Below, piece by piece: positions 40,471-63,186 of a stretch of 64,000 bases of DNA. The notes beneath the pieces were generated by a model, which was not told the origin of the DNA, searched no databases, and saw only the letters and a program-made list of their open reading frames with translations. The position numbers were made by a program, and so were the translations under genes. Position 1 is the first letter of the stretch. The number at the start of each line of letters is the position of its first letter. Location: the IMG/VR virus record IMGVR_UViG_3300044701_003953, positions 62,001-126,000 of that record. One strand, given 5' to 3'.

Positions 40471-40785
40471 ATGAACGACGTCGACAAACTGATTGGAACC
40501 ATCCGCCAGGCCACTGATTACCAAACGAATCGTAAGATACTCAGGGAGAAGATACAGACTGAATTACATATCACCTACAATGGTGGTATGTTTTTAGTGA
40601 CCAGAGATCTCTTGAGCTTCCTAGCGACTTGGCCAGAACCTACACTTTATCTCGAAGACATATATGAGAACCCCATTGAGATCAACAGAGACGAATTACT
40701 GTATCAATGCCGCCAGAGGTATCAAGCAGTGATGAATTCCTGGCATCAACAACATGCTGAACTACGGAAAATCAGAAAAATCTAG
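40471..40785 (+). CDS. hypothetical protein
   Basis: 104-aa ORF at the head of the accessory operon, overlapping the next gene. Confidence 0.7.
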   Translation: MNDVDKLIGTIRQATDYQTNRKILREKIQTELHITYNGGMFLVTRDLLSFLATWPEPTLYLEDIYENPIEINRDELLYQCRQRYQAVMNSWHQQHAELRKIRKI

Positions 40786-41536
40786 AGGCGCGGTAATATT
40801 CGCCAACAATACCGAAACAGTAGATTATCTTTCTATAGCACAAGCCAATGCTCGATTGATAGATCGATACTTAGGTCTACCTACGACCATACTGACAACA
40901 ACCGATGATACAAAAACGAATCGTCGTTACGATGTTACTAACCAGCAAGTCGTTGAATGGAAAAACTTTGGCAGATCGAAAGCGTTCGATCTCAGCCCAT
41001 ACGATGAGACGTTACTGGTCGACTCGGATTATCTGATCATGGATGATGCGTTTAGTAAAGTCTTTGATGTAATAAACGATTACATGTTGCCGGATAAAAA
41101 TCTCTACGCCACCAACATCGACGTACAAGAGACCATGGGGGAATACAGTCTGCCTTTTGTCTGGGCCACGGCGATATTTTTTAAAAAGACAGATCGTAGT
41201 CGGCAATTATTCGATTTCGTTAAAATGATAGAAAAAAATTATTCTTACTATCGTGCTCTGTACAACATCAAAGATGGTAATTATCGAAACGACTATGCTT
41301 TCGCTATCGCACATTATGTGATCAACGGATACACTATATCTCAACGAGAATTCCTTCCGTGGCCTATCGTGACTGTTCCGGGGGTGTTAGATTCTCTCGT
41401 GTTGGATGATAATAAGTTGACGATCAGGACTCCTGACCGCGCCTATGTTTCTCCTAAACAGAGCATCCACATACTAAGCAAGCACTACCTACAGACACAA
41501 GATTTCCGAGACTTAGTAGAGGCCGCTCTTGCGTAA
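40754..41536 (+). CDS. putative GT-A fold glycosyltransferase (GT8-like)
   Basis: LSPYDETLLVDSDYL (DxD after a hydrophobic strand), RNDYAFAIA. Confidence 0.6.
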   Translation: MLNYGKSEKSRGAVIFANNTETVDYLSIAQANARLIDRYLGLPTTILTTTDDTKTNRRYDVTNQQVVEWKNFGRSKAFDLSPYDETLLVDSDYLIMDDAFSKVFDVINDYMLPDKNLYATNIDVQETMGEYSLPFVWATAIFFKKTDRSRQLFDFVKMIEKNYSYYRALYNIKDGNYRNDYAFAIAHYVINGYTISQREFLPWPIVTVPGVLDSLVLDDNKLTIRTPDRAYVSPKQSIHILSKHYLQTQDFRDLVEAALA

Positions 41537-42404
41537 ACAGCCACATCAAGCACAGGCAGGATTCCTGACATTCGCGCAGAATACCGCGGACGTCGACTAC
41601 TTGCGACTGGCCTATTTGCAGGCGCTAAATATAAAATCAACACAGCGAAACAACCAGTTCGCGATCATAGTCGATTCACAAACAGAAAAAGAAATCACAG
41701 AAAAACAGCGTCGGATATTTGACTTTGTCGTAGTATTAGACGAAGACCACGCACAAGAAGATACTTGGAAGCTCTCTAACGAATGGCAGGCATTTTGGCT
41801 AACCCCATTCAAGGAGACAGTGAAATTAGAATCCGATCTATTGTTCACTCGTAGCATTGATCATTGGTGGCATGCTTTAAGAACACGAGAATTAGTCTTG
41901 AGCCATGGATGTAAAAATTATCTACAGAAAACTTCATTGAATCGTAGATATCGCCGGACGTTCGACGAAACAGGATTACCCGATGTCTATAATGGACTCA
42001 TGTATTTCCGTTTTTCTCGCACAGCATCCACATTCTTCGCCTATGCTCGCGACATATTCCGGAACTGGGATTCAGTGAGAGATCAATGTTTGAAGAATTG
42101 CCGCGACGAAAAGCCTACAACAGACATCGTCTATGCGTTAGCGGCAGAGATCGTGGGTCGAGAAAATTGTACGATACCTAGTCTGGATTTCGTGAATTTC
42201 GTACACATGAAACCATCCATACAAAATTGGCATGGTGATAATGATTGGCAAGACTGTGTAGTATCAGAATTTGATTCTGGAATGATACGAATCAATAATA
42301 TAAATCAGTATCATCCGTTACATTATCAAGATAAGACTTTCCCCACTGATGGAATGATTGATTATTATGAACGACGAATTACCGGCACTGCTGGAAGTAT
42401 TTAA
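41529..42404 (+). CDS. putative GT-A fold glycosyltransferase, paralogue of the upstream gene
   Basis: TTG start with upstream GAGG; LTPFKETVKLESDLL, YNGLMYF, TTDIVYALA, FVHMK. Confidence 0.6.
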   Translation: MRKQPHQAQAGFLTFAQNTADVDYLRLAYLQALNIKSTQRNNQFAIIVDSQTEKEITEKQRRIFDFVVVLDEDHAQEDTWKLSNEWQAFWLTPFKETVKLESDLLFTRSIDHWWHALRTRELVLSHGCKNYLQKTSLNRRYRRTFDETGLPDVYNGLMYFRFSRTASTFFAYARDIFRNWDSVRDQCLKNCRDEKPTTDIVYALAAEIVGRENCTIPSLDFVNFVHMKPSIQNWHGDNDWQDCVVSEFDSGMIRINNINQYHPLHYQDKTFPTDGMIDYYERRITGTAGSI

Positions 42405-42726
42405 AAACCTTCCCGAACTTGTCGAGTCGGAAGTGGAATATCGTCTTTATTACAACGAGGACGGTACTGTTTTATCAATGAGCTCGGGTGATTTTCCTGT
42501 TGAAGGAAAATATATAAAGATCGATAAAGAGATTTACGATCGGCCCAATTATTCGACAATGCGGGTGATCAATGGGAAACTAACCATACTTGAAAATGTT
42601 TCACATCATCGCAATGATCTATATCGCGGAGGCGATAGATTCCTCGTAGTCAAAGGACATGCCAACATATTAGTAGATGACACATACCAAGGAGAAACAG
42701 AAACATATGGCTTCAAGAATCATTGA
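42367..42726 (+). CDS. hypothetical protein
   Basis: 119 aa from ATG 42367; YRLYYNEDG motif; overlaps both neighbours. Confidence 0.65.
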   Translation: MNDELPALLEVFKNLPELVESEVEYRLYYNEDGTVLSMSSGDFPVEGKYIKIDKEIYDRPNYSTMRVINGKLTILENVSHHRNDLYRGGDRFLVVKGHANILVDDTYQGETETYGFKNH

Positions 42727-43639
42727 TGTCGCAGACATAGATTGCATCTATCTCAGTTACGACGAGCCACAGAAGGAAGCGTTCTGGATCAAGATACAGA
42801 ACATGGTACCCTGGGCCAAGCGAGTGGATGGCGTCAAAGGATCCGACGCCGCACACAAGGCCGCCGCTGCCAAGTCTGACACAGAATTTTTCGTGCTCAT
42901 TGACGGAGACAACTTGCCCGACGGTGACTTCTTTAATCTACAACTGGCAGTAGGCGAAGACGAAGCTGATGCTGCCTGGCGCTGGAAAGCCCGCAATCAC
43001 ATCAACGGACTCATGTATGGCAACGGTGGCATGAGTGTGTGGAGCAAGCGGTTTGTGGAAGACATGAAAACCCACGAAGCATCGGATGGCAGCGATCGCA
43101 CAGCAGTGGAGTTCTGTTTCGAACCCAAATACTTTGCCATGCACAACTGCTACTCGACCACTTACCCCAATGGTAGCCCTTACCAAGCATGGCGTGCTGG
43201 ATTCCGTGAAGGCGTCAAGATGTGTCTGGACAAAGGCCGCAAGCCCACGCTACAAGAGTTTGATGACTCAGTGCAACGGCGCAACTTTGACAACCTCTGC
43301 ATCTGGCAGACCGTGGGTCGTGATGTAGAAAACGGTATATGGGCCATCGCAGGAGCACGCCTAGGTACCACTATGACAATGATACATGATTGGGATCACA
43401 GGAACGTACAAGACTTTGATGAGCTTAAAAAGATCTGGGAAGATTGCGTCAAAGATCTAGATCCCGAAGAATTAGCTGCCAAAGAAGGGCAACTGTTACG
43501 CAGTCGACTAGGTATGCCCATCGCAGAGTTTGACGCAGAGCAAAGCAAATTTTTTAAACATCATTACTCTACGGGGCACAAGAACCTAGACATGATGACC
43601 AAAGAGATCGATGTGATCCGTCGTATCGAAGGATGGTGA
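42707..43639 (+). CDS. putative glycosyltransferase (GT-A-like, SYDEP type)
   Basis: DCIYLSYDEP, KRVDGVKG...AHKAAA, FVLIDGDN (DxD), INGLMYGNGG, AWRAGFREGVK; GGAG upstream of ATG 42707. Confidence 0.6.
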   Translation: MASRIIDVADIDCIYLSYDEPQKEAFWIKIQNMVPWAKRVDGVKGSDAAHKAAAAKSDTEFFVLIDGDNLPDGDFFNLQLAVGEDEADAAWRWKARNHINGLMYGNGGMSVWSKRFVEDMKTHEASDGSDRTAVEFCFEPKYFAMHNCYSTTYPNGSPYQAWRAGFREGVKMCLDKGRKPTLQEFDDSVQRRNFDNLCIWQTVGRDVENGIWAIAGARLGTTMTMIHDWDHRNVQDFDELKKIWEDCVKDLDPEELAAKEGQLLRSRLGMPIAEFDAEQSKFFKHHYSTGHKNLDMMTKEIDVIRRIEGW

Positions 43640-45045
43640 TGAATAAAGGCGACGAAGCAGTAGGCAACAAAAGCAAGTTCATGGCTTCAGCCGAGTGGAT
43701 GAAAGAACACCTCGGCGAAGGGTTCTGCTTGGCCAAATGGAAGCAGGTCAGCCTACACTTGCCCACAGGACTCAACAACTCCTGCTACCATCCTCCCTTG
43801 CACCACATCGATCCTGCGCCACTCAAAGATAATCCCGGCGCATTGCACAACACCGAGCACAAGAAACAACAGCGTGTTATCATGCTGAAAAACGAGCGTC
43901 CTGGTGAATGCCAATACTGCTGGAACATCGAAGACACCGGCAATCTCAGCGACAGACATTATCGCAGTGGCGAACCCTGGGCAGCCGAGGACTATGAAGC
44001 CATCCGTGCCTCCGCAGGCACCGAAGACTGGATTCCCAGTTATGTAGAAGTCAACTTCAATCATGCTTGTAATCTGGCCTGCTCGTATTGTAGCCCACAG
44101 TTTTCGTCGACCTGGCAATCGGAAGTAGACAAGTGGGGAGCCTGGCCTACGTCAACTCCACACAACGCACCCGAGCACTTCCAAGGTCGCAATCGTCCCA
44201 TCCCGCACAGCCAAGAGAATCCCTATGTGGATGCTTTCTGGGAATGGTGGCCACAACTGTATCCCAAGTTGAAACATTTCCGCATGACTGGCGGTGAACC
44301 ACTCATGGATCGAAATACCTACAAGGTGTTTGACTATGTGTTAGCCCTGCCCAACCCTGAGCTACATCTCAATGTCACTTCTAACTTCTCTGTGGAACCT
44401 AAACTGTTTGAGAAATATCTCGACTATGTGAAACGCTTGTGTAACACACAGATCGAACACTTCATGCAATATGTGAGCCTAGACACCGGCGAACCTCAGC
44501 ATGCCGAATACATCAGGCATGGGCTCAACTTCCGTCGCATGTGGGATTATGTACATCGCTATCTCGACGAGATCCCGTATCGCAACAGCCTCACATTCAT
44601 TATCACCATGAACAATCTGTCGGTCCTGGGCATACAACGACAACTGGAGTGGATCCTGGATCTGCGGCGCATGTATTCCAAGACCTATCAGCGTGTGTGG
44701 TTTGATACTCCATTGTTGCGCCAGCCTAAATGGCAGAGCCTACAGATACTTCCGCCAGTGTATGCTGACCGACTCGAGCGTGTGGCAGACTGGATGGAAC
44801 TAAACTTAGAAACGCCCGAGGATCCCTTCCACGGTTTCAAAGACTATGAAGTGCAACGCATCCGGCGCGACATCGCGTGGATGCGTGAAGGACAGAAACT
44901 GGATCACGACTACATAGTTGGACAACGTGCCGACTTCTATCGTTTCTTCAATGAACACGACAAGCGTCGTGGCACTGATTTTGAAAGGACTTTCCCTGAG
45001 ATGCGGGAATTTTGGCAGGAGTGCAGATACCATGCCCAACGATAA
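43633..45045 (+). CDS. radical SAM protein with N-terminal twitch-like domain (AKW subtype)
   Basis: FCLAKW...SCYHP...CQYC; CNLACSYC; TGGEP. Confidence 0.9.
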   Translation: MVMNKGDEAVGNKSKFMASAEWMKEHLGEGFCLAKWKQVSLHLPTGLNNSCYHPPLHHIDPAPLKDNPGALHNTEHKKQQRVIMLKNERPGECQYCWNIEDTGNLSDRHYRSGEPWAAEDYEAIRASAGTEDWIPSYVEVNFNHACNLACSYCSPQFSSTWQSEVDKWGAWPTSTPHNAPEHFQGRNRPIPHSQENPYVDAFWEWWPQLYPKLKHFRMTGGEPLMDRNTYKVFDYVLALPNPELHLNVTSNFSVEPKLFEKYLDYVKRLCNTQIEHFMQYVSLDTGEPQHAEYIRHGLNFRRMWDYVHRYLDEIPYRNSLTFIITMNNLSVLGIQRQLEWILDLRRMYSKTYQRVWFDTPLLRQPKWQSLQILPPVYADRLERVADWMELNLETPEDPFHGFKDYEVQRIRRDIAWMREGQKLDHDYIVGQRADFYRFFNEHDKRRGTDFERTFPEMREFWQECRYHAQR

Positions 45046-46117
45046 GTTTTGTGTTCGTCCTTTCATGCACAGTCTTGTTGACACCGAAGGGCGATTCAAA
45101 CCTTGTTGCCGTAGTCAAGTTGACACTGGATTTAATATCAAGTCACATACTGTTGAAGAATGGTGGAACAGCGAATATCTCAATGATTTCCGTGACAGGA
45201 TCAAAAGAAACGAATACAGCAAAGAATGTGACAGGTGCTATCGACAGGAACAGCAAGGATCAAAGAGCTTCCGCGAATACAGCAACGAACGGTGGCCAGA
45301 TGTCAAAACTACTAGAGAAAGACCAATCGATTGGGAGATACAGTTATCAAATCTTTGCAATTTGAAATGTTTGATGTGTAACCCACAATCCAGTAGCCAG
45401 TTCTTAGTAGAAGAAAATAAGCTATTTGGAAAAAAGTGGGATCAAACCAAATACGATTGGGATGCCAAAGACAACAGCAAGATACTCGAGATAATGCAAC
45501 AAAGCGAGAGTTTCATCCTACGAGGCGGAGAACCGTTTATGTTGCCGTGGGTAAAGGACATCATCTCATCGTTAGCAGATCGAAAAGAAATAATGATAGC
45601 TACCAACGGCACTCGGTTCGATCAAAGTTGGCTTGACGTCCTTTCGGGGCACGACATCAAGATTTGTCTGAGCCTTGACGGGCACGGAAAACTCAATCAT
45701 TACATACGCTATCCTAGTAAATGGAATGACATACTGGATAACATCAAATTGATGCGGAAGATCCCAGGTGTGAATCTTTTCGTGAACACCGTAGTCCAAA
45801 ATCTCAACGTGTTACACATCGACCGATTGTTAGACTGGACCAAGGGCGAAGAGTTATTTGTGCAATTCGATATACTAACTAAACCTAAATATCTAGAACC
45901 GTCGTGCTTACCTGCCGAGTTGGCTAAACTCGCACAAGACCGTCTGGGCAGAGTTGATCACCAATCTCAGAATGGGCTCGAAGGGATAATCAATACTTTA
46001 GATAATGCCACAGATGAGTATTGGGAAGAATTCGTGGAAACTATAACTATCAGAGATAGACATCGTGGCGTAGATATAGTAAACTATATACCCGAGATGG
46101 AGCCATACTTTGCCTAG
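45032..46117 (+). CDS. radical SAM protein with N-terminal twitch-like domain
   Basis: Start reassigned to ATG 45032 (AGGAG upstream); FCVRPF...PCC...CDRC; CNLKCLMC; GGEP; ATNGT; LSLDG. Confidence 0.9.
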   Translation: MPNDKFCVRPFMHSLVDTEGRFKPCCRSQVDTGFNIKSHTVEEWWNSEYLNDFRDRIKRNEYSKECDRCYRQEQQGSKSFREYSNERWPDVKTTRERPIDWEIQLSNLCNLKCLMCNPQSSSQFLVEENKLFGKKWDQTKYDWDAKDNSKILEIMQQSESFILRGGEPFMLPWVKDIISSLADRKEIMIATNGTRFDQSWLDVLSGHDIKICLSLDGHGKLNHYIRYPSKWNDILDNIKLMRKIPGVNLFVNTVVQNLNVLHIDRLLDWTKGEELFVQFDILTKPKYLEPSCLPAELAKLAQDRLGRVDHQSQNGLEGIINTLDNATDEYWEEFVETITIRDRHRGVDIVNYIPEMEPYFA

Positions 46118-47462
46118 ACTACATAATGAAACTGACCTAGAATTCCGGAAACGTGTGCTCGATTCTAAGAGTGCTAGTTTCTGTGGAGCCAAATGGTACA
46201 ACGCTACCATATGGTTAGGCTCCGGCATGACCACATCCTGTCATCACCCTCCTGCGCATTTCGTGCCAGTGGAGGCCATCCAACGTAACCCCAAGGCGCT
46301 ACATAACAGCGACGAAAAGAAAAACGACCGCGCCATGATGCAACGTGGCGAACGTCCACCCGGTTGTGAGTATTGCTGGAAGATCGAAGACATGGGTCGT
46401 GATGCTGTTTCAGACCGTGTCTATAAAAGCGTGATCTACACCGACGAGGAACTCAATGAAGCTTATCTATTACCCACCGCTGAGGACGCAAATCTACGCA
46501 CTCTCGAAATCAGTTTCGATCGTACTTGCCAATTGGCTTGTAGCTACTGTAATCCTGCTTTCTCTTCTACATGGGTTAAGGACATTAAAACCCGAGGGCC
46601 TTATATCGAGTTGGTTAGTGATGGTAGGAATCACTTCACTCATGATCACGCTAGTGCTCAACTTTATCGATACGGTGAAGTCAATCCGTATGTTGAGGCA
46701 TTTTTCCGCTGGTGGGAAACCGACCTACATAAGACGCTTAGAGAGTTACGGATCACCGGAGGAGAACCACTCATGTCCGGCTACACCTGGCAACTCATCG
46801 ACTGGTTCAAACAAAACCGCGGCAAGTCAAACACACGCCTAGCCATCAACTCCAACTTGGCTATGCCGTCGGATCGTATACAAGAACTCCTAGATGCTTG
46901 CGAGGGTATCGAACTGGATATCTATACTTCCAACGAAGCACTACATTCGCAGGCCGAATACATCAGAGACGGGCTCCAATGGCAACAATGGCAAACCAAC
47001 ATGCGTTTGTTGGCCTCCAGTGGTAGGCTACGGGGCTTACACAACATGTGTACTATCAACGCATTGTGTCTCGAATCATTGCCTGAGTTCTTGGATTTCT
47101 TGGTAGAGATGAAACGAGAGTTTGGCAGAGATTTCCCCAACTTCACGCTAAACATCCTGCGTTTTCCGTCGTTCCAAAGCCCTTTGGTGTTGCCTGATGA
47201 CATACGTGAACACCACAAGCAGAGACTAGTTGAGTGGATGGTCAAGCACAAAGGCCACAGCTATCTACATCAGCATGAGATAAACCATGTGCTAAGATTG
47301 ATAGATTATCTAGATGTAGTCAAGACTCCGCACCGCGAGACTTTTGAGCGTCCAGCCCTACACAACGACTTCCGTAAATTCTACGAACAATACGATCAGC
47401 GTAGGGGTAAAAATTTCCCCGAAACATTTCCTGGCCTAGCCGACTGGTATTCCACACTATGA
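46110..47462 (+). CDS. radical SAM protein with N-terminal twitch-like domain (AKW subtype)
   Basis: TTG start with GGAG; FCGAKW...SCHHP...CEYC; CQLACSYC; TGGEP. Confidence 0.9.
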   Translation: MPRLHNETDLEFRKRVLDSKSASFCGAKWYNATIWLGSGMTTSCHHPPAHFVPVEAIQRNPKALHNSDEKKNDRAMMQRGERPPGCEYCWKIEDMGRDAVSDRVYKSVIYTDEELNEAYLLPTAEDANLRTLEISFDRTCQLACSYCNPAFSSTWVKDIKTRGPYIELVSDGRNHFTHDHASAQLYRYGEVNPYVEAFFRWWETDLHKTLRELRITGGEPLMSGYTWQLIDWFKQNRGKSNTRLAINSNLAMPSDRIQELLDACEGIELDIYTSNEALHSQAEYIRDGLQWQQWQTNMRLLASSGRLRGLHNMCTINALCLESLPEFLDFLVEMKREFGRDFPNFTLNILRFPSFQSPLVLPDDIREHHKQRLVEWMVKHKGHSYLHQHEINHVLRLIDYLDVVKTPHRETFERPALHNDFRKFYEQYDQRRGKNFPETFPGLADWYSTL

Positions 47463-53078: not shown

Positions 53079-53151
53079 GATCCGATCAGAAATACAATAC
53101 CGTAAAAAACTCAAAGAAATGCGAAAGCGCGATCCTTTCATTTATAAATGA
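53050..53151 (+). CDS. 33-aa basic microprotein (not in ORF track)
   Basis: MNWLKRLINKIRSEIQYRKKLKEMRKRDPFIYK*; AAGGA upstream; ATGA overlap with the next gene. Confidence 0.65.
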   Translation: MNWLKRLINKIRSEIQYRKKLKEMRKRDPFIYK

Positions 53152-53702: not shown

Positions 53703-55197
53703 CGCTGCCGCGAGTCTAGTAGACAAAGACGGCAATATCATGTTCGCTGGCCACAGTGAACGTTACAGCAAGAGCAAGAACGATGCCAACATCTGTCCTG
53801 GGCTGCTGACTGATATTCCTGTCAAAGTGGATCATATCGCTTATTACGAAAAGCCATGGCTGAAACAAACACGTCAATTATATTCAGGACAAGGTATCGA
53901 GTGGGGTAAACTGACCACCGATGGTATATTGGTAGATCAACTCGGGGACTGGATCTATCAACAAAACCCCGGGTTTAATCCTCATCGAGAAGTGTATTGG
54001 GATTGTGGTTTGCCTGAGATCAGTAGCTACCGCCATCACCTTAGTCATGCTGCCGCAGGATTCCAGACCAGCCCCTATCAAGAAGCCACGGTGGTAGTGT
54101 GTGACGCTATCGGCGAATGGGACACAGCTTCGATCTATCATGCTTGGTATGACGATAAAGGTCGTGCCCGATACAAGAAACTATGGGGCCAACGCTATCC
54201 GCATAGCCTAGGCATGTTCTACTCGGCGTTCACTAAGCGCCTAGGATTGAAGCCAATGGACGAAGAATACATACTCATGGGCATGGCTGGTTGGGGCAAA
54301 AGTACCTGGTTCAATCGTATCTTTGATGAACAAGTGGACGACATCGCGGAATTAACATTCAAAAACAATCTACATCTAGGCCTAGACGACAATTACCTGG
54401 ATGCGGCCCGCGACGAAGACCTAGCAGCCAGCGTACAAGAGATCACTGAGTGGGCGGTGTGCAGACTCATGGAACGTGCTCGTATGTTAGGTAGTAGCGA
54501 CAATCTCGTTTACATGGGCGGTGTGGCGCTCAACTGCTTGGCTAATCGTTTGCTAGGCAAATACTATTCTAACATCTGGATCATGCCAAACCCAGGTGAT
54601 GCTGGCAGCAGCCTTGGTGCCGCTGCTCTTGCCTATGGCAAAAAATTAAACTGGCAAGACGCTTATCTAGGACATGTGATACCAGGACCTTATCCAGTAA
54701 AAGACTTGCTAGATGAGTTACTAACTAATAAAATAGCGGGTGTGGCATCAGGTGCCGCAGAATTTGGTCCACGTGCTTTAGGTAATCGTAGCCTACTAGC
54801 AGACCCGCGTGGAGAAGATATAAAGGATCGTGTCAATGAAATTAAGCGACGTCAAAAATTTAGACCCTTTGCCCCAGTCATACTGGCCGAGATGGTCGGT
54901 GACTACTTTGATATGCCACCTGGCTGGACTGACAGCGATTATATGCAAGTCGTCGCTAAGTGTCGCCGTCCTGATCTTTTTCCTGCTATATGTCATATTG
55001 ATGGCACCAGCAGAGTACAGACAGTTCCGAAAGATTCGAGATCGGGAATCCGTCAACTCTTAGAGCAATGGTATGTGATGACAGGATGTCCTATGTTGTT
55101 GAATACCAGCCTCAACATCCGTGGAGAGCCAATGGTCAACGATCGCGACGACGCCGATCGTTTTGAAAATTTATATAAAGTGAGAGTTTGTTCATGA
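53668..55197 (+). CDS. O-carbamoyltransferase, NodU/CmcH/TobZ family
   Basis: HDAAA, HHLSHAA, DAIGE, GGVALNC, PGDAG, EFGPRALGNRS, FRPFAP, HIDGTSRVQTV, LLNTSLN. Confidence 0.93.
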   Translation: MNILGISAGFHDAAASLVDKDGNIMFAGHSERYSKSKNDANICPGLLTDIPVKVDHIAYYEKPWLKQTRQLYSGQGIEWGKLTTDGILVDQLGDWIYQQNPGFNPHREVYWDCGLPEISSYRHHLSHAAAGFQTSPYQEATVVVCDAIGEWDTASIYHAWYDDKGRARYKKLWGQRYPHSLGMFYSAFTKRLGLKPMDEEYILMGMAGWGKSTWFNRIFDEQVDDIAELTFKNNLHLGLDDNYLDAARDEDLAASVQEITEWAVCRLMERARMLGSSDNLVYMGGVALNCLANRLLGKYYSNIWIMPNPGDAGSSLGAAALAYGKKLNWQDAYLGHVIPGPYPVKDLLDELLTNKIAGVASGAAEFGPRALGNRSLLADPRGEDIKDRVNEIKRRQKFRPFAPVILAEMVGDYFDMPPGWTDSDYMQVVAKCRRPDLFPAICHIDGTSRVQTVPKDSRSGIRQLLEQWYVMTGCPMLLNTSLNIRGEPMVNDRDDADRFENLYKVRVCS

Positions 55198-55622
55198 TCA
55201 AAAAAATATTGATAATGGGATTACCCGGATCAGGTAAAAGCACATTAGCTGAACCCTTCGCCAAGCTCATCGGTGGGGTATGGCTCAATGCCGACGCAGT
55301 CCGCACCGAATACGACGATTGGGATTTCTCTCCCGAAGGCCGCATGAGGCAAGCCATGAGGATGCGATATCTCGCCGACGGTGTCGCCAAGGCAGGTAAG
55401 ATAGCAGTGGCCGACTTTGTATGTCCTACAGAAAAAGCTCGTGCTGAGTTTGGAGCAGATTATGTGATCTGGATGGACACTATCAAAGAAGGACGCTTCG
55501 AAGACACCAACAAGATGTTTGAACCGCCATCAAGATTCGATTATCATGTTGAAAGTTGGTTCACAGACACGCACGAACAACTAGCTAAGGTAGTAACCAA
55601 ATATATCGGAGATATCAAATGA
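55194..55622 (+). CDS. adenylylsulfate (APS) kinase-like P-loop kinase
   Basis: GLPGSGKST, LNADAVR, DFSPEGR, ADFVCP, FEPP resemble CysC; ATGA coupling to the carbamoyltransferase. Confidence 0.72.
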   Translation: MIKKILIMGLPGSGKSTLAEPFAKLIGGVWLNADAVRTEYDDWDFSPEGRMRQAMRMRYLADGVAKAGKIAVADFVCPTEKARAEFGADYVIWMDTIKEGRFEDTNKMFEPPSRFDYHVESWFTDTHEQLAKVVTKYIGDIK

Positions 55623-56032
55623 GTTTCAATCCACAAAAACCCACTACGCAGATGCTCGGAAGGTGGCAACCGTGGCATCCTGGCCATACTGCCTTGTTCA
55701 AGAAAGCCTTGCTAGAGACTGGGCAGGTATGTATACAGATCCGTGATGTAGGAGGCATCGTTGGAGCAGATGCCGGCGGTGGCCGCACAGTAGCACAAAC
55801 AGACAATCCTTTTGATTACGACACAGTGGTCGCTAACATCAAGACAGCGTTAGCCGCTGAGGGATTTGACTACGGCGAAGAGTATATCATCATGCAAGTT
55901 CCAAACATCGTGGACATCAGTTATGGACGTGGTGTGGGCTACACGTTCACACAGCATGACCTCGGCGAAGAGATCCACGCGATCAGTGCCACACAGATAC
56001 GAGCACAGTTGAGGGCCGAAGGTAAGTTGTAA
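55619..56032 (+). CDS. small HxGH nucleotidyltransferase (cytidylyltransferase-like)
   Basis: GRWQPWHPGH, NPF, ISATQIR. Confidence 0.8.
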   Translation: MSFNPQKPTTQMLGRWQPWHPGHTALFKKALLETGQVCIQIRDVGGIVGADAGGGRTVAQTDNPFDYDTVVANIKTALAAEGFDYGEEYIIMQVPNIVDISYGRGVGYTFTQHDLGEEIHAISATQIRAQLRAEGKL

Positions 56033-56244: not shown

Positions 56245-57355
56245 GATTTTCTTTCAGTTCTTTCCAACCATGATGTAGCAATCTTCCGCTACTGATTAGA
56301 TCGTTGTTGTGTGCTAATGTATCCCGCATCTCCAACAACATATCTTTTAGTTCTTCTAAAGACTTAGATGAAATATATTTCACGATTTCTGATACCTCTT
56401 GTAGACGTTTGATCGGATCCTCGATGGAATCGTAACTTTCGTCCCACCACTTGTCGAAGGTTTCAAATCCATAGCTTTTTAGATACTTTAGATTGTTTAC
56501 GCATCCTACTAGAACAAATGGTTGTTGTAGCATCACAGGCTTGAAGATTTTTTCTGTTAAATGAGATTTTTTATCCCAGAAACAAGTTTCGGTCACGACA
56601 TGCAAGAAACTTTCCATGTTTTCTTTCATTGACCCTAGAGTCATGCTTCCATTTGGTATATATTTGTCGTCTGTGGAATCGATGCGTAACGGGAATTTTA
56701 TTTTATCCAGGGTTCGTATAGTCTCTTCAGCATAGTCTGGAAGGATATCGTATCTTGATATTGACTCTAATATATTTTCTCTGTAATGACCATATATCGG
56801 ACAGTCGTGGCTGTAACTGATGTGCCCTTGCTCGATAAGATCTCTTTTCGCTAATTCCGATACTAGGAATGAGCGGTATACTCGAGCTCCTCCGGTCAAT
56901 CTGTTAAACGTGATAAACTTTTTAGTGATAGTACGATCTTCAATTGGCATCAGGCTTTCATCAAATTCGTAACCACGATACCAGTCCGAAACCGCGAAGA
57001 TATGGAAAAAAGAATATGCTTCCCTGAATTTGAATTTTTCTAATAGGATATTTTTTTCTTGACTTTCGAGTTCTGTATTAAGTAAAATAATCCTATCGGG
57101 ATCTGTTATGTTTGTAAACTCCATGACATGGGAAAACAATCTTTCGTTGAATCCAGATATCAATGGTTCTTGATCGTAGCAAAGCAATAAAGGTCCTCGG
57201 TCATCGGGACCAAGATCCGGCCGATCATCTGCTAGTATTTCAAGGTTTTCTGGTTCGGTTGTTCCAAATGGATGTAAGTATGCGACGCGAGGGTCGTCGC
57301 ATATAGTCTTAGCGAAGTTCCAGACATTCTGGTAGTGCTTATGGATATTATACAT
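56213..57355 (-). CDS. putative glycosyltransferase-like protein (GT-B C-terminal-type motif)
   Basis: FLHVVTET...LTEKIFKP...PFVLVG...GFETF..WWDESYD, reminiscent of the E-N-S...TEK motif of GT10-type enzymes; opposite strand to its neighbours; looks AT-rich. Confidence 0.5.
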   Translation of the reverse strand: MYNIHKHYQNVWNFAKTICDDPRVAYLHPFGTTEPENLEILADDRPDLGPDDRGPLLLCYDQEPLISGFNERLFSHVMEFTNITDPDRIILLNTELESQEKNILLEKFKFREAYSFFHIFAVSDWYRGYEFDESLMPIEDRTITKKFITFNRLTGGARVYRSFLVSELAKRDLIEQGHISYSHDCPIYGHYRENILESISRYDILPDYAEETIRTLDKIKFPLRIDSTDDKYIPNGSMTLGSMKENMESFLHVVTETCFWDKKSHLTEKIFKPVMLQQPFVLVGCVNNLKYLKSYGFETFDKWWDESYDSIEDPIKRLQEVSEIVKYISSKSLEELKDMLLEMRDTLAHNNDLISSGRLLHHGWKELKENLTMAVTSVPK

Positions 57356-59783
57356 GTTTGATGTGTTTTATTTTGGCGAAAAGCCAAATCTATTTGAGTT
57401 TGAAAAACCTGCTGAGTCTATAGCAGATGCCGCTGGCATGAGTCGAACTCGTCTGTGCTGGTATATTTATGGGTCTAATGATTACACCAAATTTGATTTC
57501 TCATGGCAACCGGCACCGTGGGACGAAGGATACATCAATGTGTTTGGAAGCCAATGGCAGAAAAACAGCGGTGTCTATTTGTTGAACCCCGCCACCGTAC
57601 AAAATAATCAATTGAAATTCGTCGATGAACAGACGGCACCGCGTTTGATACACGACACAGATTTATGGTTCATCCCCGATCACATCGAAACGTCAACGGT
57701 AGATCAGACATGGCATCCCGACCCACTGGATCCTCCTTACATCTATCACTTCCCCAGCCAACATCAAAGTTCGTCGGGAGTGACTTATACTGTGCCCGGT
57801 GCGACACATATCAAATTAGTTAGTGACTTTGTAGTTACCTCTATCGCACAATCTGAACGCTGGACGGTGCCCGAAGAGATTGATGCCACCAAAGTGGACT
57901 TTACCTGGCATCCTAGCGCACTAGACCCTCCTTACGTCTATCACTTCCCCAGCGAATGGCAGGAGAGTTCGGGCCTGGAATATCACACACCCGGCGCCAC
58001 TGAGATCAAGATAGCCACAGACTCGCCTTACTTCGAAGAAGCCGTGAGCCGTGTGTTGGATATCTTCTTCGTAGATCACTACAATAATCAAAGTGCCCAA
58101 CGCTGGGAGAAGTTAGTAGCACGTTATCCACACGCACAAAAGATACGATTCGCTAACACTGAAATAGATACTATACGACGTTGCTGTAACAGATCCACTA
58201 CTAATCGTTTCTGGGTGGTATCTAGCGAATGCGTATACGACGACTTTGATTTCGCTTGGCATCCTGAGTCATGGCAGCGTTTCATGACACATGTGTTTGG
58301 TAGCCAATGGCAGAAATGGTCTGCTACATACCTGATCAACAAGTCAGAGTTTGATCGTAACGCCAAGTGGGCGAAATCCCTGGAAGAGTTTCCCAACCTC
58401 AACTTCGTGCGCAACCAACCTGTCGTCATCCCCGACGACTTATATGACATCTATTACGTCGACCACGGCAATCAAGAAAGTCGGGATCAGTTCAATCGAC
58501 TACGAGAAGATCATCCCGATATGCGTACTACACGATTCGTGGACAACTATCTCGATACATTGAAACGTATCATGAGCACAGCCGAGACGGAATATGTGTG
58601 GGTGATAAGTTCCATCTGCGATTACTCAGTGTTTGATTTCTCTTGGCAACCCGAACCCTGGCAAGCCGAAATGATCCATGTGTTTCCCAGCAATTCAGAA
58701 AAGCGCGGCGACACGTTCTACATACATGTGGAGTCTTTTAAGCGACAGATGGCCGATCTTGAAATCCTGGATTGGTTCAATGTCATCAACTACACCAACG
58801 AACAATGGGTACAGCGTTTCCCCGTGCCCACCGTGACCTATGACGGTGACAGCCTAGTGGATGTAGTGCGTGATCATGACTTTGGTTCCGATATCTATGT
58901 CAAGTTCCGTTACTCGAAAAATGGTGACATAGACTATACACCCTGTATCTGGCGTGCCAAAGATCGAGCTGTACATAGCCTCAGCGTCAACAATGCTACG
59001 GCACTCGTGCCCAGGGATGTCAAGCAGTATCCCTTGGTCCAGATGTATGACTATCCAGAAATCGACAAGACCAAACGCACCATGTTGTTGGGCAGGCCGT
59101 TAGACGTGATATTCATCAGCAACGGTGAAACAGAAGCCGAGCGGTGGTATAAACACCTAGAAGACACACTTTTTGACAAGTATCTAGGCGAAATAACAGC
59201 CAAGCGAGTCATGAATGTTGACGGGCGTACTCGCGCCTATCAAGCAGCCGCAGAAGCTTCAGAAACAGACTGGTTTTTCGCTGTGTTCGCTAAACTAGAA
59301 GTTGTGCCCACTTTCGATTGGTTTTGGCAACCCGATTATTTCCAGGAAGCCAAACACTACATCTTCAATGCCCGCAATCCCGTCAATGGCCTGGAATATG
59401 GACACATGGGCGTGATCGCTTACAACAAGAGATTGGTGCTAGAAACCAATGACCCGGGACTTGACTTTACATTGAGCCGTGCGCATGAAGTAGTGCCAGT
59501 ATTGTCAGCGATCTCACACTTCAACTCTGATCCTTGGATGACTTGGAGGACCGCGTTCCGTGAGGTGCTTAAACTACGTCACTATCTCGACATCAATCCT
59601 ACATTAGAGACCGAGCATAGGCTAGAGATTTGGTGTACTCGCGCCGAGGGAGAAAATGCCGAATGGAGCTTGCGTGGAGCTAACGACGCTATCAGCTACT
59701 ATGAGGAAGTGAGAGGACATCTACCAGATCTTATGAAGAGCTTCGATTGGGCCTGGCTTCGCGACATGTATCAACGAAGATAG
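57354..59783 (+). CDS. multi-repeat glycosyltransferase-like protein
   Basis: Recurrent FDFxWxPxxW units; C-terminal domain aligns with 42707..43639 (AKRV, ARNxxNGLxYG, WRxxFRE). Confidence 0.6.
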   Translation: MFDVFYFGEKPNLFEFEKPAESIADAAGMSRTRLCWYIYGSNDYTKFDFSWQPAPWDEGYINVFGSQWQKNSGVYLLNPATVQNNQLKFVDEQTAPRLIHDTDLWFIPDHIETSTVDQTWHPDPLDPPYIYHFPSQHQSSSGVTYTVPGATHIKLVSDFVVTSIAQSERWTVPEEIDATKVDFTWHPSALDPPYVYHFPSEWQESSGLEYHTPGATEIKIATDSPYFEEAVSRVLDIFFVDHYNNQSAQRWEKLVARYPHAQKIRFANTEIDTIRRCCNRSTTNRFWVVSSECVYDDFDFAWHPESWQRFMTHVFGSQWQKWSATYLINKSEFDRNAKWAKSLEEFPNLNFVRNQPVVIPDDLYDIYYVDHGNQESRDQFNRLREDHPDMRTTRFVDNYLDTLKRIMSTAETEYVWVISSICDYSVFDFSWQPEPWQAEMIHVFPSNSEKRGDTFYIHVESFKRQMADLEILDWFNVINYTNEQWVQRFPVPTVTYDGDSLVDVVRDHDFGSDIYVKFRYSKNGDIDYTPCIWRAKDRAVHSLSVNNATALVPRDVKQYPLVQMYDYPEIDKTKRTMLLGRPLDVIFISNGETEAERWYKHLEDTLFDKYLGEITAKRVMNVDGRTRAYQAAAEASETDWFFAVFAKLEVVPTFDWFWQPDYFQEAKHYIFNARNPVNGLEYGHMGVIAYNKRLVLETNDPGLDFTLSRAHEVVPVLSAISHFNSDPWMTWRTAFREVLKLRHYLDINPTLETEHRLEIWCTRAEGENAEWSLRGANDAISYYEEVRGHLPDLMKSFDWAWLRDMYQRR
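57666..58015 (+). repeat. ~65-aa (195-nt period) internal duplication
   Basis: VDQTWHPDPLDPPYIYHFPSQHQSSSGVTYTVPGATHIK versus VDFTWHPSALDPPYVYHFPSEWQESSGLEYHTPGATEIK. Confidence 0.85.
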
Positions 59784-60877
59784 TCTTGGATACTATAAGC
59801 GACGTGCTCAACTTCTGCGTCAGTCATCTCGGGATAGATGGGAAGGCTTAGTGCTTCCGCGGAGTGGGCATGACCCACGCGGAATATCTCGGTGGCATAG
59901 TTGACGAAATCTTGCGCCACTGGGTAATCATATAAGGGTGTTTCGTAGTGTATCCTGGTCTCGATCCCTTGTGTTTCTAGATATTCTTTCAACTTATTTC
60001 GTTCTATAGTCCGGATCACATACTTGTGCCACGACGACTCTGTGTGGCGATCTGGTAATATGGGGTCCACCCAATCCATGAGTTCCTGTGTGTAGAACTC
60101 GGCGATCTCTTTCCTGCGACGTTGCCACCGATCGAAATGCTTGAGCTTGACTAGCAGTTGGGCGCATTCAGCTTCACTCATCTTGGAGTTAGTGCCTGTG
60201 CTGTAGAATCCGTCGGGCTTGCCGTTGTCTCTTAAGCCCATTAGTCGCACATAAACGCCAGCATCGTCGGTGAGTATCATGCCACCAGATCCATATGCTG
60301 GCAAGTTCTTGGTGGGATCAAAACTCAACACACTGATGTCGCCCATCTTACCTGATGGCACACCATCGCGACTGGCACCGAAACTCTGTGCGGCGTCTTC
60401 GATGATGGGGATGTCTTCGTTGAAGAAGTTGGTCTCTACTCGGAGTTTGTCGTAGTCTAGACAGTTGCCGAATATGTTCACATACATGACACCGCCTACA
60501 CCCGTGCCTTTGAGGGCATAGTCCAGGCTTTCGAAATCCAGCAAGGCACGATCATCTACATCACAGAAGCGTGGTTCGTTGTTGGCCATGAACACGGAAT
60601 TCAGTGTGGCCACGAAACTCACTGTAGGGATAAGGATGCGTGTCTGTTGTAAGCCCAAGGCCATCTGTGCGAATATGAGTCCTTGGCTACACGAGTTCAC
60701 TGCTACGGCGAACTTGCGTTCGCATCTCATAGCGATAGCACGCTCGAATTTTTCCGTGTAAGGTCCATCTAGCACACGACCCGAACTCCATACCGAGTCA
60801 GCGGCGTCTAGTAGTTCTTCGCGTAGATCAGAGTATTGTCGTTGGAGACCAAAAAACGGAATCTTTGAGCCAGTCAT
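59771..60877 (-). CDS. DegT/DnrJ/EryC1/StrS PLP-dependent sugar aminotransferase
   Basis: KIPFFGL, EDAAQSFG, SFDPTKNL (PLP lysine), LSLPIYPEM; start set at ATG 60877. Confidence 0.92.
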   Translation of the reverse strand: MTGSKIPFFGLQRQYSDLREELLDAADSVWSSGRVLDGPYTEKFERAIAMRCERKFAVAVNSCSQGLIFAQMALGLQQTRILIPTVSFVATLNSVFMANNEPRFCDVDDRALLDFESLDYALKGTGVGGVMYVNIFGNCLDYDKLRVETNFFNEDIPIIEDAAQSFGASRDGVPSGKMGDISVLSFDPTKNLPAYGSGGMILTDDAGVYVRLMGLRDNGKPDGFYSTGTNSKMSEAECAQLLVKLKHFDRWQRRRKEIAEFYTQELMDWVDPILPDRHTESSWHKYVIRTIERNKLKEYLETQGIETRIHYETPLYDYPVAQDFVNYATEIFRVGHAHSAEALSLPIYPEMTDAEVEHVAYSIQDYLR

Positions 60878-61799
60878 AATAGATCTGGAACCCTTCGTCG
60901 ATGTCGACCTTGGGGTCGAACCCAAAGTCATTGCGGGCCGCATCGATGTTCAATGCTCCGCGGCTGGGGAAATCCGCGTCACGATCGCGCACATCGATCG
61001 TGCCCGAACCTGCGATAGTGACTGCGAGTTCTGCGGCTTCTAATAGAGTCTTTGAATGACTCTTGGTGATGTTATAAGTCTTGTTGACAGCGGCTTCGCT
61101 TTGTGCGGCATCGGTGATACCACGTGCGGCGTCAACCACATAAGTGAAATCTAGTGTTTCGCCAGCGCCGTTGACTGTGATAGTCTCGCCACGCATGGCC
61201 TTGATAAGGAACTTGGCGATCACACGGTCGCCGACATCTAGTGGTCCATACACAGCACTGGGACGGATGATGGTGTAGGTCATGCCACTCTTGCGGCAGT
61301 AGTCTTTGACCAACATTTCTCCCATGAGCTTCCAGATACCATATTGACCTTGTGGGCGGCACACAGCATCTTCACGCACATCGTCCTTGAAGTCACCGTA
61401 GACCATGGAAGAACTGACATAGACGAAACGCTGGACACCAGCGGCCACGGCACTTTCCAACATGTTGGTGAGTCCTTCGCACATCACACGGCAAGCGTGA
61501 TAAGGATTGGCGTTGACGGCTTTCTGTCTAGGGTAGCTGGCTAAGTGGATCACCGCCTCTGGATGGAATCCACGGATGGCGTCATCTAGTGGCCCGGTCT
61601 GTAAGATGTCGATCCTTGATACGGAAGTCTTGAACTTCGAGATGCGCTCGTTGGCCAAGTAGATCATCTCCGAGTGTGGCACCGATCCCGAGTAATCGGT
61701 AAACGAATCGATAGCCTTTAACTCATGTCCTTGTGATTCGAGCATGCCCATCACATTGTGGCCGATGAGTCCGGCCGCGCCAGTTACTAATATTTTCAT
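60828..61799 (-). CDS. NAD-dependent NDP-sugar epimerase/dehydratase
   Basis: GAAGLIG, SSSMVYG, YGIWK (YxxxK), RPSAVYGP, DFTYVVD. Confidence 0.92.
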   Translation of the reverse strand: MKILVTGAAGLIGHNVMGMLESQGHELKAIDSFTDYSGSVPHSEMIYLANERISKFKTSVSRIDILQTGPLDDAIRGFHPEAVIHLASYPRQKAVNANPYHACRVMCEGLTNMLESAVAAGVQRFVYVSSSMVYGDFKDDVREDAVCRPQGQYGIWKLMGEMLVKDYCRKSGMTYTIIRPSAVYGPLDVGDRVIAKFLIKAMRGETITVNGAGETLDFTYVVDAARGITDAAQSEAAVNKTYNITKSHSKTLLEAAELAVTIAGSGTIDVRDRDADFPSRGALNIDAARNDFGFDPKVDIDEGFQIYYDWLKDSVFWSPTTIL

Positions 61800-63185: not shown

Positions 63186-63186
63186 A

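Follow-up and report, generated by a model that had tools for sequence, protein, structure and literature searches.

The window analyzed here is a stretch of 64,000 nucleotides from a large environmental phage (positions 62,001 to 126,000 of IMG/VR record IMGVR_UViG_3300044701_003953). Within this window, positions 40471 to 61799 hold a densely packed 21-kb block of genes whose families point to the making, transfer, and decoration of sugars, built around six intact copies of an uncharacterized radical SAM (rSAM) enzyme family (Table 1). The block starts just after a strong terminator hairpin that closes the tail-fiber genes. From 40471 to 56244, 19 plus-strand genes follow one another, and 16 of the 18 junctions overlap, one is flush, and the only gap is of 69 nt (53078-53148). 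Genes further upstream are tail-fiber-like by PHROGs and Pfam. These results confirmed the initial annotation of the region as a tightly coupled island behind the tail-fiber module.

Table 1. Features of the island and its upstream border, in window coordinates, with supporting results
Position	Strand	Feature	Supporting results
18976..33126		ORF of 4716 aa upstream of the island	
39401..40396		Last fiber gene before the island	
40415..40443	.	Bidirectional intrinsic-terminator-like hairpin; left border of the island	13-bp stem with 6 GC pairs and T-runs on both strands
40471..40785	+	Conserved 104-aa protein of unknown function; first gene of the island	Present in all covered relatives and in RsoM2USA ORF354; no Pfam, PHROG or PDB match
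40754..41536	+	GT8-like (glycogenin-like) GT-A protein, paralogue a	hhalign to the 41529 family: probability 98.8, E=8e-17; D90 and D92 invariant
41529..42404	+	GT8-like (glycogenin-like) GT-A protein, paralogue b	Family profile hits glycogenin-1 in the PDB at E=1.7e-6 over the nucleotide-binding half; D103 invariant
42358..42726	+	Conserved 122-aa protein of unknown function	Syntenic in relatives; no family or PDB match
42677..43639	+	Divergent protein with a predicted GT-A fold and a DGDN motif; best-conserved partner among the non-rSAM genes	AlphaFold pLDDT 87; Foldseek top 50 are glycosyltransferases and sugar-nucleotidyltransferases sharing the GT-A-type fold, E from 2.5e-4, TM about 0.3; G77, D78 and N79 invariant; homologues next to N_Twi rSAMs in Bdellovibrionales
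43633..45045	+	rSAM1, N-terminal twitch family, clade A, backbone gene	NF033640 306 bits; clade A support 100/99; RsoM2USA ORF349 orthologue E=2e-121
45032..46117	+	rSAM2, accessory copy found only in the closest relatives	NF033640 281 bits; orthologues only in relatives L002 and L032; ATG at 45032 overlaps the rSAM1 stop
46110..47462	+	rSAM3, clade A, backbone gene	NF033640 300 bits; RsoM2USA ORF202 orthologue E=1e-190, flanked by SGNH-like genes and a carbamoyltransferase
47459..48790	+	rSAM4, clade B, backbone gene	NF033640 396 bits; 5,896 clusters at 50% identity match at E<=1e-10; fused to an rSAM5-type domain in P0121, P0124 and P0127
48777..49991	+	rSAM5, clade C, backbone gene	NF033640 338 bits; clade C support 95/95 together with Bdellovibrionota members that sit next to clade B copies
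49978..51282	+	rSAM6, backbone gene	NF033640 287 bits; orthologues 61-92% identical in relatives
51275..51463	+	62-aa protein with one predicted membrane helix	Found only in the closest relatives
51464..52531	+	Conserved 355-aa protein with a predicted fold known only from uncharacterized phage proteins	pLDDT 88; no PDB match; BFVD matches only to uncharacterized phage proteins, including one from Atu_ph07; weak homologues near bacterial rSAM arrays
52509..53078	+	SGNH/GDSL-like protein	No Pfam hit; joint family profile hits 4rsh, a GDSL protein, at E=1e-4; S, N and H invariant
53148..53702	+	SGNH/GDSL-like protein	No Pfam hit; same profile; three copies flank the rSAM3 orthologue in RsoM2USA
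53668..55197	+	NodU/CmcH-family carbamoyltransferase	Pfam Carbam_trans_C 164 bits, Carbam_trans_N 130 bits; below the NodU equivalog cut-off
55188..55622	+	Small P-loop kinase, weakly APS-kinase-like	Pfam APS_kinase 34 bits; PHROG 10255 'kinase' E=1e-34; all NCBIfam matches far below cut-offs
55619..56032	+	Small nucleotidyltransferase-like protein, weakly NMNAT- or cytidylyltransferase-like	Fused to the kinase in relative L002
56032..56244	+	DUF2061 small membrane protein	Pfam 76 bits
56213..57355	-	380-aa protein of unknown family (Y)	No match in Pfam, NCBIfam or PDB; in relatives, copies interleaved between the rSAM genes
57354..59783	+	809-aa protein with five N-terminal W-x-P repeats; C-terminal domain (residues 581-780) homologous to the 42677 GT-A fold but lacking the DxD motif	hhalign probability 99.3, E=9e-21; repeats read from the sequence
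59771..60943	-	DegT/DnrJ/EryC1 sugar aminotransferase; likely true start is the internal ATG at 60877	Pfam 258 bits; best NCBIfam matches PseC, ArnB, WecE and DesI, all below equivalog cut-offs
60828..61799	-	Extended SDR NDP-sugar dehydratase/epimerase	Pfam Epimerase 151 bits; best NCBIfam match dTDP-glucose 4,6-dehydratase at 114 bits, below cut-off

All six rSAM genes belong to NCBIfam NF033640, the twitch domain-containing radical SAM proteins (N_Twi_rSAM), and exceed its cut-off of 170 bits over the full model length. They carry the four auxiliary-cluster (twitch) cysteines at the N-terminus and keep an intact CX3CX2C motif about 100 residues later. The initial annotation listed up to five glycosyltransferase-like proteins, and four of them are supported by profile or structure comparisons. 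The fifth candidate, Y, has no detectable family and is unsupported as a glycosyltransferase. The remaining gene content was as described there, although the similarities of the kinase and nucleotidyltransferase are weak and a sulfation role is not indicated.

Gene order in the island is kept in more than 40 related IMG/VR contigs. In these contigs, which carry five to seven rSAM copies, extra rSAM, SGNH-like, and Y-like genes are inserted between the five backbone rSAM genes. The rSAM and GT-A genes are better conserved than the fiber genes. However, synteny within one phage lineage may be inherited order rather than functional coupling. Parts of the island also recur in the cultured Ralstonia jumbo phage RsoM2USA, a very distant phage. 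There, a fiber-like gene, a homologue of the 40471 gene, two GT8 genes, a 184-aa ORF with no detected match (in the 42358 position), the GT-A gene, and rSAM1 follow directly after virion genes confirmed by MS, while a module of rSAM3, three SGNH-like genes, and a carbamoyltransferase lies elsewhere in the genome.

Independent links between this rSAM family and sugar enzymes were found outside the phage lineage, in the rSAM3, SGNH-like, and carbamoyltransferase module of RsoM2USA and in Bdellovibrionota. In the latter, first, a carbamoyltransferase–N_Twi rSAM fusion lies beside GT4, DegT, and an ABC-2 exporter pair in a Bacteriovoracaceae MAG. Second, two PMT_2 GT-C genes and a Wzt-like ATPase accompany the family at another locus, two GT2 genes do so in a Bdellovibrio isolate, and DegT lies next to a five-rSAM array. 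Third, a homologue of the 42677 GT-A protein is adjacent to an rSAM gene in four Bdellovibrionales loci. The association in bacteria is nevertheless moderate, as only 23 of 72 loci showed a sugar gene nearby, and the sugar-gene panel was 2.2-fold denser within 5 kb of bacterial arrays than further out (p about 0.01). Furthermore, single copies in Flavobacteriales sit beside what look by eye like a hemE and ABC-F genes.

Collectively, these results favor sugar editing over peptide maturation or DNA modification, and the island probably makes an unusual, heavily edited glycan. With moderate confidence, we propose that it is a cytoplasmic pathway that builds and then chemically edits a sugar or short glycan. 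In this view, the SDR enzyme and the DegT aminotransferase would convert a host NDP-hexose into an NDP-4-amino-4,6-dideoxyhexose, and the kinase and nucleotidyltransferase pair would activate a second building block, a step that is only weakly supported. The two glycogenin-like GT8 proteins and the divergent DxD GT-A protein would then transfer sugars to an acceptor. The five backbone rSAM enzymes, with their variable accessory copies, would abstract hydrogen from unactivated sugar carbons, with oxidation, epimerization, deoxygenation, or C–C bond formation as possible outcomes, and rSAM4 and rSAM5 would act as a pair. Finally, the carbamoyltransferase and the SGNH-like proteins would add or remove carbamoyl and acyl groups. 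What the analysis established is the glycosyltransferase fold and motif, the family membership of the rSAM proteins, their intact cluster motifs, and the pairing or fusion of rSAM4- and rSAM5-type domains; every enzymatic activity and the chemistry of the rSAM enzymes are inferred, largely from what the respective families do.

No flippase, polymerase, initiating phosphoglycosyltransferase, or exporter was found among the genes of the island, and the only predicted membrane proteins are two small ones of 62 and 70 aa, so the acceptor is probably cytoplasmic. A virion protein is our favored guess, for example the fiber protein with 28% Ser+Thr encoded immediately upstream, and accessory-gene turnover between relatives would then diversify the glycan. 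This choice rests only on position, the absence of export genes, and composition. The initial annotation proposed one pathway making a heavily decorated glycan, with virion proteins, the host surface, phage DNA, or a small aminoglycoside-like molecule as possible targets, and this interpretation is supported only in part. The gene content and its ordered co-occurrence in relatives agree with it, and it was right that sequence cannot name the target. In contrast, the DegT/SDR pair is transcribed with ThyA and DHFR on the other strand from the rSAM block, and its membership of one pathway rests on synteny only. The annotation's comparison with the rSAM enzymes BtrN, NeoN, AprD4, and DesII found no support in homology beyond the generic rSAM core.

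Two alternatives are possible but less likely, and to a similar degree. One retains the same chemistry but places the target in the host envelope, where the enzymes would act on cytoplasmic-face lipid-linked O-antigen, capsule, or LPS-core intermediates and use the host's own flippase or exporter, changing the cell surface during infection and blocking superinfection. Bacterial relatives sit in loci with Wzm/Wzt-type exporters and GT-C enzymes, GT8 is a classic LPS-core family, and O-chain modification was proposed for GT8 genes in the same kind of region of pelagimyophages (PMC7029224). However, no membrane-bound seroconversion proteins, acyltransferase-3, flippase, or polymerase are present, genes placed behind the virion genes are presumably expressed late, which is a poor time for exclusion, and the module sits beside a fiber-like gene in the very distant RsoM2USA too.

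In the other alternative, the rSAM enzymes would install crosslinks, epimerizations, or oxidations in virion fiber proteins or in a peptide, and the glycosyltransferases and tailoring enzymes would be a separate or only loosely linked function. Most characterized SPASM/twitch enzymes are peptide maturases, and the weak secondary NCBIfam hits are to such maturases. Elusimicrobia fuse this family to TPR repeats, which bind proteins, rSAM arrays lie beside tail-fiber genes in several phage lineages, and bacterial arrays often include further rSAM types. On the other hand, there is no RRE domain and no precursor-like small ORF, and the single 69-nt gap is the only intergenic space between 40471 and 56244. 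The adjacent fiber proteins contain no cysteine, which excludes thioether chemistry on them, and both the carbamoyltransferase fusion and the SGNH-like and Y genes interleaved between the rSAM genes argue against this reading.

It is unlikely that the region is not one system but a hypervariable region in which unrelated accessory genes have accumulated and are kept in order by descent. Such regions occur behind the fiber genes of T4-like marine phages, RsoM2USA splits the genes into two distant modules, and DegT and SDR are in another transcription unit. However, nearly all gene junctions overlap, the same partnerships recur independently across phyla, including gene fusions, and the rSAM and GT-A genes outlast the fiber genes in conservation. 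A diffusible product, either aminoglycoside-like or a modified nucleotide or nucleotide-sugar acting on the host, on competitors, or on a defense system, is about as doubtful. Dehydratase, DegT, carbamoyltransferase, and rSAM form the gene palette of aminoglycoside and nucleoside-antibiotic clusters, there are weak hits to prokaryotic viperin models, and a minimal four-gene unit of GT-A plus three rSAMs stands alone among housekeeping genes at locus L115. Against it, no cyclitol synthase, exporter, or self-resistance gene was found in the searches of the island, three or four glycosyltransferase-like proteins suggest an oligosaccharide on an acceptor, and the position beside fiber genes is conserved. 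Least likely is hypermodification of phage DNA by glycosylation or carbamoylation of a base, as, although the island adjoins ThyA and DHFR and holds a P-loop kinase and glycosyltransferase-like proteins, and jumbo phages often modify their DNA, the ThyA is a canonical thymidylate synthase (289 bits to solved TS structures) paired with DHFR, nothing points to hydroxymethyl-pyrimidine synthesis, no DNA-binding, base-flipping, or hydroxymethylase component was found, and bacterial relatives lie in envelope-glycan contexts.

Among known families, NF033640 fits the six rSAM proteins best, but it is only a sequence definition, for which our literature search found no substrate, product, enzyme activity, or paper, and the phage arrays contain at least three deep subclades of it. 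Compared to the sugar-acting enzymes BtrN, NeoN, AprD4, and DesII, the island shares the setting of rSAM enzymes working beside DegT-type aminotransferases, dehydratases, and, for tobramycin, a carbamoyltransferase. BtrN has one auxiliary twitch cluster, but the twitch domain of these enzymes is C-terminal. A PDB profile search gave nothing at E<=1e-3 and NCBIfam gave no equivalog match; a similar mode of action remains possible, whereas membership is not supported. Compared to RiPP radical SAM/SPASM maturases (for example sactipeptide, ranthipeptide, and darobactin-type), the proteins share the rSAM core plus an auxiliary Fe-S domain and the occurrence of several copies per cluster, with weak secondary hits to these models, but their auxiliary domain is N-terminal with a single cluster, there is neither an RRE nor a precursor gene or space for one, and the partners are sugar enzymes.

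Several genomic settings also resemble the island. One is the hypervariable region behind the giant VrlC-like protein and tail fibers of pelagimyophages and cyanomyophages, and marine MAG-binned contigs L043-L046 carry much of the same cassette order as the island at about 50% identity. The study of that region (PMC7029224) gives no function for the rSAM cassettes, and the phage examined here is nearer to PA5oct/XacN1/RsoM2USA-type jumbo phages. In bacterial ABC-transporter-dependent polysaccharide loci, the rSAM family lies with GT4, DegT, a carbamoyltransferase, and ABC-2 membrane and ATPase genes (locus L066) or with a Wzt-like ATPase and GT-C genes (locus L073), while the phage island has no exporter, initiating transferase, or polymerase. 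Virus-encoded glycosylation machineries, such as those for chlorovirus capsid glycans, Mimivirus fibril sugars, and glycosylated mycobacteriophage virions, provide their own nucleotide-sugar synthesis and soluble glycosyltransferases and decorate the virus's own particle in the cytoplasm. None of these is known to use radical SAM enzymes, and none is known to have five to seven of them.

The ORF map of the region agrees with that of the initial annotation, and the observation of a dense block of sugar-related genes built around six radical SAM (rSAM) genes holds. From 40471 to 56244, nineteen plus-strand genes follow each other, with nearly all junctions overlapping and a single gap of 69 nt. 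A terminator-like hairpin sits exactly between the last fibre gene and the first gene of the island, and the left border at 40471 is therefore taken to be a real transcriptional boundary. Scans of the window for T4-type late promoter TATAAATA sites found none, sigma-70-like hits were at chance level, and no tRNA or Rfam match was found. The window matches IMG/VR contig IMGVR_UViG_3300044701_003953, which is 207.5 kb long. The SbcCD-like nuclease of this phage is 51% identical to that of PA5oct-type jumbo phages. The coordinates of the features are collected in the table, and genes are referred to below by their start coordinate where they have no family name.

Features of the island and its flanks, with the supporting sequence and structure evidence
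Coordinates	Strand	Feature	Evidence
18976-33126		Single 4716-aa ORF preceding the fibre genes	Positional counterpart in Ralstonia phage RsoM2USA, ORF361 (2541 aa), is a virion protein confirmed by mass spectrometry
33846-36170		Collagen-like tail fibre, first of three paralogues	The three share an N-terminal module of about 125 aa and a C-terminal module of about 150 aa; the latter is Peptidase_G2 / intramolecular-chaperone-like and 68% identical between the first and third; the middles differ; none of the three contains a cysteine
36204-37784		Tail-fibre paralogue, second	As for 33846-36170
37845-39386		Tail-fibre paralogue, third	As for 33846-36170
39401-40396		331-aa protein, last fibre gene	28% Ser+Thr
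40415-40443		Bidirectional terminator-like hairpin	Perfect 13-bp stem, T-runs on both strands
40471	+	First gene of the island, no detectable family	
40754-41536	+	GT8-like protein, paralogue of 41529	hhalign probability 98.8; acidic residues invariant
41529-42404	+	GT8-like protein	Family profile hits glycogenin-1 (GT8) at E=1.7e-6 over about 110 residues; acidic residues invariant; Pfam Glyco_transf_8 not matched at E<=0.01
42358	+	No detectable family	
42677-43639	+	Predicted GT-A-type fold	Confident model (pLDDT 87); best 50 PDB matches by Foldseek share the GT-A-type fold (mostly glycosyltransferases, plus sugar-nucleotidyltransferases such as HddC and RmlA), E from 2.5e-4, probability 0.77-1.0, TM only about 0.3; conserved DGDN
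51464	+	No detectable family	Confident model; no PDB match by Foldseek; only uncharacterised phage relatives
52509-53078	+	SGNH/GDSL-like protein	Shares with 53148 a GDS start and invariant Ser, Asn and His (S8, N36, H160/H166); reaches a PDB GDSL structure at E=1e-4 over blocks I-II only; no Pfam match
53148-53702	+	SGNH/GDSL-like protein	As for 52509-53078
53668-55197	+	NodU/CmcH carbamoyltransferase	Both Pfam domains matched, 130 and 164 bits against cut-offs of 24 and 27; NodU equivalog not reached (136 against 1000)
55188-55622	+	Kinase, weak assignment	Fused to 55619 in a relative (L002)
55619-56032	+	Nucleotidyltransferase, weak assignment	Fused to 55188 in a relative (L002)
56213-57355	-	No detectable family	
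57354-59783	+	809-aa protein	Residues 581-780 repeat the 42677 fold (E=9e-21) but have lost the DxD motif; the N-terminal 450 residues contain five copies of a motif of the form F-D-F-x-W-x-P, followed a few residues later by V-F
59771-60943	-	DegT/DnrJ/EryC1 aminotransferase	Pfam 258 bits; no equivalog cut-off reached, so the sugar is unspecified
60828-61799	-	Extended SDR	Pfam 151 bits; no equivalog cut-off reached, so the sugar is unspecified
59771-63236	-	DegT, SDR, canonical thymidylate synthase (ThyA) and DHFR	One co-directional, overlapping run; order kept in at least 13 other contigs

All six rSAM genes match NCBIfam NF033640, 'twitch domain-containing radical SAM protein' (N_Twi_rSAM), over the whole model and above the curated cut-off of 170 bits, with scores of 306, 281, 300, 396, 338 and 287 bits for rSAM1 to rSAM6. 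The CX3CX2C motif is present in every copy, and of the four N-terminal auxiliary-cluster cysteines, C42, C60 and C105 are invariant and C102 is nearly invariant. Pfam SPASM/twitch matches lie N-terminal to the rSAM core in four of the six. Secondary matches to viperin, MoaA, AhbD, anSME and peptide maturases are weak and generic, and a profile search of the PDB found nothing at E<=1e-3. A tree separates at least three deep clades, each with both phage and bacterial members: clade A holds rSAM1, rSAM3 and RsoM2USA ORF202, clade B holds rSAM4, and clade C holds rSAM5. Clade B and clade C genes are neighbours in Bacteriovoracaceae and Oligoflexia, as they are in the window, and rSAM4-type and rSAM5-type domains are fused, in either order, into single polypeptides of about 800 aa in the metagenomic representatives P0121, P0124 and P0127 (also P0191 and P0244). 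These observations suggest that the two probably act together.

Further searches were made to assign the remaining genes and to find relatives among cultured phages. Pfam, PHROGs, NCBIfam and PDB profile searches gave nothing for 40471, 42358, 51464 and 56213. Profile comparison by hhalign was negative between the 56213 family and the GT-A family, and also between 42677 and the GT8 family. The T-E-x(n)-TEK motif in 56213 resembles GT10-type transferases, although this is no more than a lead and was supported by none of the tools used. A megablast of the whole island against 50,697 phage records gave no match, while tblastn of the rSAM, GT-A and GT8-like proteins found only RsoM2USA, three or four Vibrio phages and one marine single-virus contig. 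The Ralstonia jumbo phage RsoM2USA is the only cultured phage sharing several island genes. Vibrio phage K566 (OZ196521) has four divergent N-twitch rSAM genes in a row (ORF303-308), but none of the other island families was detected there. In addition, a 2.5-kb contig binned with a freshwater Polynucleobacter MAG carries rSAM3/rSAM4 at 77% identity; the 45% GC of the window would fit such a host, but this is only a hint.

Within the lineage, gene order is well conserved. Forty-one IMG/VR loci found with rSAM4 and twenty found with DegT show the same order from the fibre genes to DHFR. The backbone reads fibre, fibre-like, 40471, GT8-like, GT8-like, 42358, GT-A, then rSAM1, rSAM3, rSAM4, rSAM5, rSAM6, and then 51464, SGNH-like, SGNH-like, carbamoyltransferase, kinase, DUF2061, 56213. 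Extra rSAMs, extra SGNH-like genes and extra 56213-like genes are inserted between the backbone rSAMs. Complete loci have five (13 loci), six (12) or seven (3) rSAMs, and a more distant group of three loci (L036-L038) has three. rSAM2 of the window is such an accessory copy, and the closest relative (L124) has an additional rSAM2-type gene at 11192-12400, between DegT and the 809-aa gene and outside the main array. The rSAM and GT-A genes are more conserved (60-95% identity) than the fibre genes (about 30-76% in most relatives; 93-95% for 39401 in the two closest).

Because synteny within one lineage can be mere descent, evidence from outside the lineage is of particular importance. RsoM2USA carries two modules. 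First, ORF355 to ORF348 reads fibre-like, 40471-like, GT8-like, GT8-like, a 184-aa ORF with no detected match (in the 42358 position), GT-A, rSAM1 orthologue and a second GT-A-like gene, and lies directly after virion genes confirmed by mass spectrometry. Second, about 90 kb away lies SGNH-like, rSAM3 orthologue (E=1e-190), SGNH-like, SGNH-like and carbamoyltransferase (E=1e-170). In bacteria, a Bacteriovoracaceae MAG locus (L066) encodes, at 1069-3873 on its minus strand, a 934-aa protein in which a carbamoyltransferase is fused to an N-twitch rSAM domain, beside GT4, DegT, an amidohydrolase and an ABC-2 exporter pair. Another bacterial locus (L073) has two PMT_2 (GT-C) genes and a Wzt-like ATPase, a Bdellovibrio isolate (L111) has two GT2 genes, a further locus (L068) has DegT and a methyltransferase next to five rSAMs, and four loci (L115 and L117-L119) pair a 42677-like GT-A with the rSAM. 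A panel of twelve sugar-pathway queries hit 0.58 genes per 10 kb within 5 kb of bacterial arrays, against 0.26 further out; this covers 23 of 72 loci, with binomial p about 0.01. However, counter-examples exist. Five tandem genes in an Elusimicrobia MAG (L055:46-13548) each fuse long TPR arrays to an N-twitch rSAM domain, and several arrays include other rSAM types. Single-copy members in Flavobacteriales loci (L084, L092, L094 and others) sit beside a gene that looks by eye, from motif reading alone, like hemE and beside ABC-F ATPase genes, with no sugar genes nearby, and this subgroup may have a different role.

Collectively, these results are best explained by a cytoplasmic sugar-building and sugar-editing pathway in which the rSAMs act on sugars, and the proposal of the initial annotation, that the genes form one pathway making a heavily decorated glycan, is partly supported. 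The fusion to a carbamoyltransferase, the recurrent GT, DegT and exporter neighbours, and the interleaving with SGNH-like genes all point that way. What the analysis establishes is the gene content and order, the family matches and motifs, and the fusions and associations outside the lineage; the glycosyltransferase activity of the GT-A protein, any dependence of SAM cleavage on a sugar or aminocyclitol, the reactions of the rSAMs and the nature of the acceptor are inferred. Among all ORFs from 40471 to 61799, no initiating transferase, flippase, exporter or polymerase is present and no multi-pass membrane protein is predicted, so the island is not a self-contained surface-polysaccharide locus of the Wzx/Wzy or ABC type. 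A cytoplasmic acceptor is therefore favored, most simply a virion protein, although this step is an inference from position and composition only.

Among the alternatives, remodelling of host envelope precursors remains a serious rival to a virion acceptor. The peptide-maturase alternative, in which the island would be a RiPP rSAM/SPASM system, is weakened on several counts. First, there is no precursor gene or room for one, as the gene junctions overlap, the only gap is 69 nt, and the small ORFs are a 62-aa and a 70-aa membrane protein. Second, no RRE or PqqD-type hit was found and the auxiliary domain is N-terminal rather than C-terminal. Third, the neighbouring fibres have no cysteine, and thioether crosslinking of them was rejected on this ground. 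DNA hypermodification is weakened by ThyA, which matches canonical TS structures full-length at 289 bits and is followed by DHFR, by the lack of any DNA-directed domain among the ORFs searched, and by the envelope-glycan contexts in bacteria; a hydroxymethyl-pyrimidine pathway was rejected, as ThyA is a canonical TS.

A more far-reaching possibility, which the evidence does not rule out but which is considered unlikely, is that NF033640 enzymes are a new class of glycan-editing radical enzymes. In this view, a fixed set of five, including an obligate rSAM4-rSAM5 pair, plus swappable accessory copies would rewrite sugars of a glycan attached to the phage's own fibre proteins. This would give related phages different particle 'serotypes', and the same chemistry would decorate the envelopes of predatory Bdellovibrionota.

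The scale of the family adds to the significance of these observations. At E<=1e-10, rSAM4 matches about 5,900 clusters at 50% identity, and more than 7,000 close relatives at 90% identity occur in metagenomes. Phages that carry five to seven copies commit about 8 kb of genome to them, and each copy should hold two iron-sulfur clusters, so that the iron investment is heavy, which implies a strong pay-off. If the sugar-editing reading is right, it would add radical chemistry to the known ways in which viruses build glycans, and it would open a large enzyme family for carbohydrate chemistry. Two cultured phage lineages, RsoM2USA and Vibrio phage K566 with its close relative K567, carry parts of the system, so it can be tested.

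The NF033640 family is catalogued but, as far as the searchable literature shows, has no assigned function; literature searches for a function of N-terminal-twitch rSAMs, or of phage rSAM arrays, returned nothing specific. Compared to the sugar-acting rSAMs BtrN, NeoN, AprD4 and DesII, no specific sequence relationship was found, either in the PDB profile search at E<=1e-3 or among the NCBIfam hits. rSAM cassettes near tail fibres have been remarked on, without explanation, in pelagimyophages (PMC7029224) and in an Aeromonas jumbo phage, 332-Vera (PQ474292), with eight such genes, called 'highly unusual' by its authors (PMC12390700), which may or may not belong to the same family. The sugar-editing reading, if right, would explain such cassettes in marine and jumbo phages. 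As the rSAM chemistry is so far only inferred, the island is best regarded not as a categorically new system but as virus-encoded glycan machinery whose parts, other than the rSAMs, are familiar.
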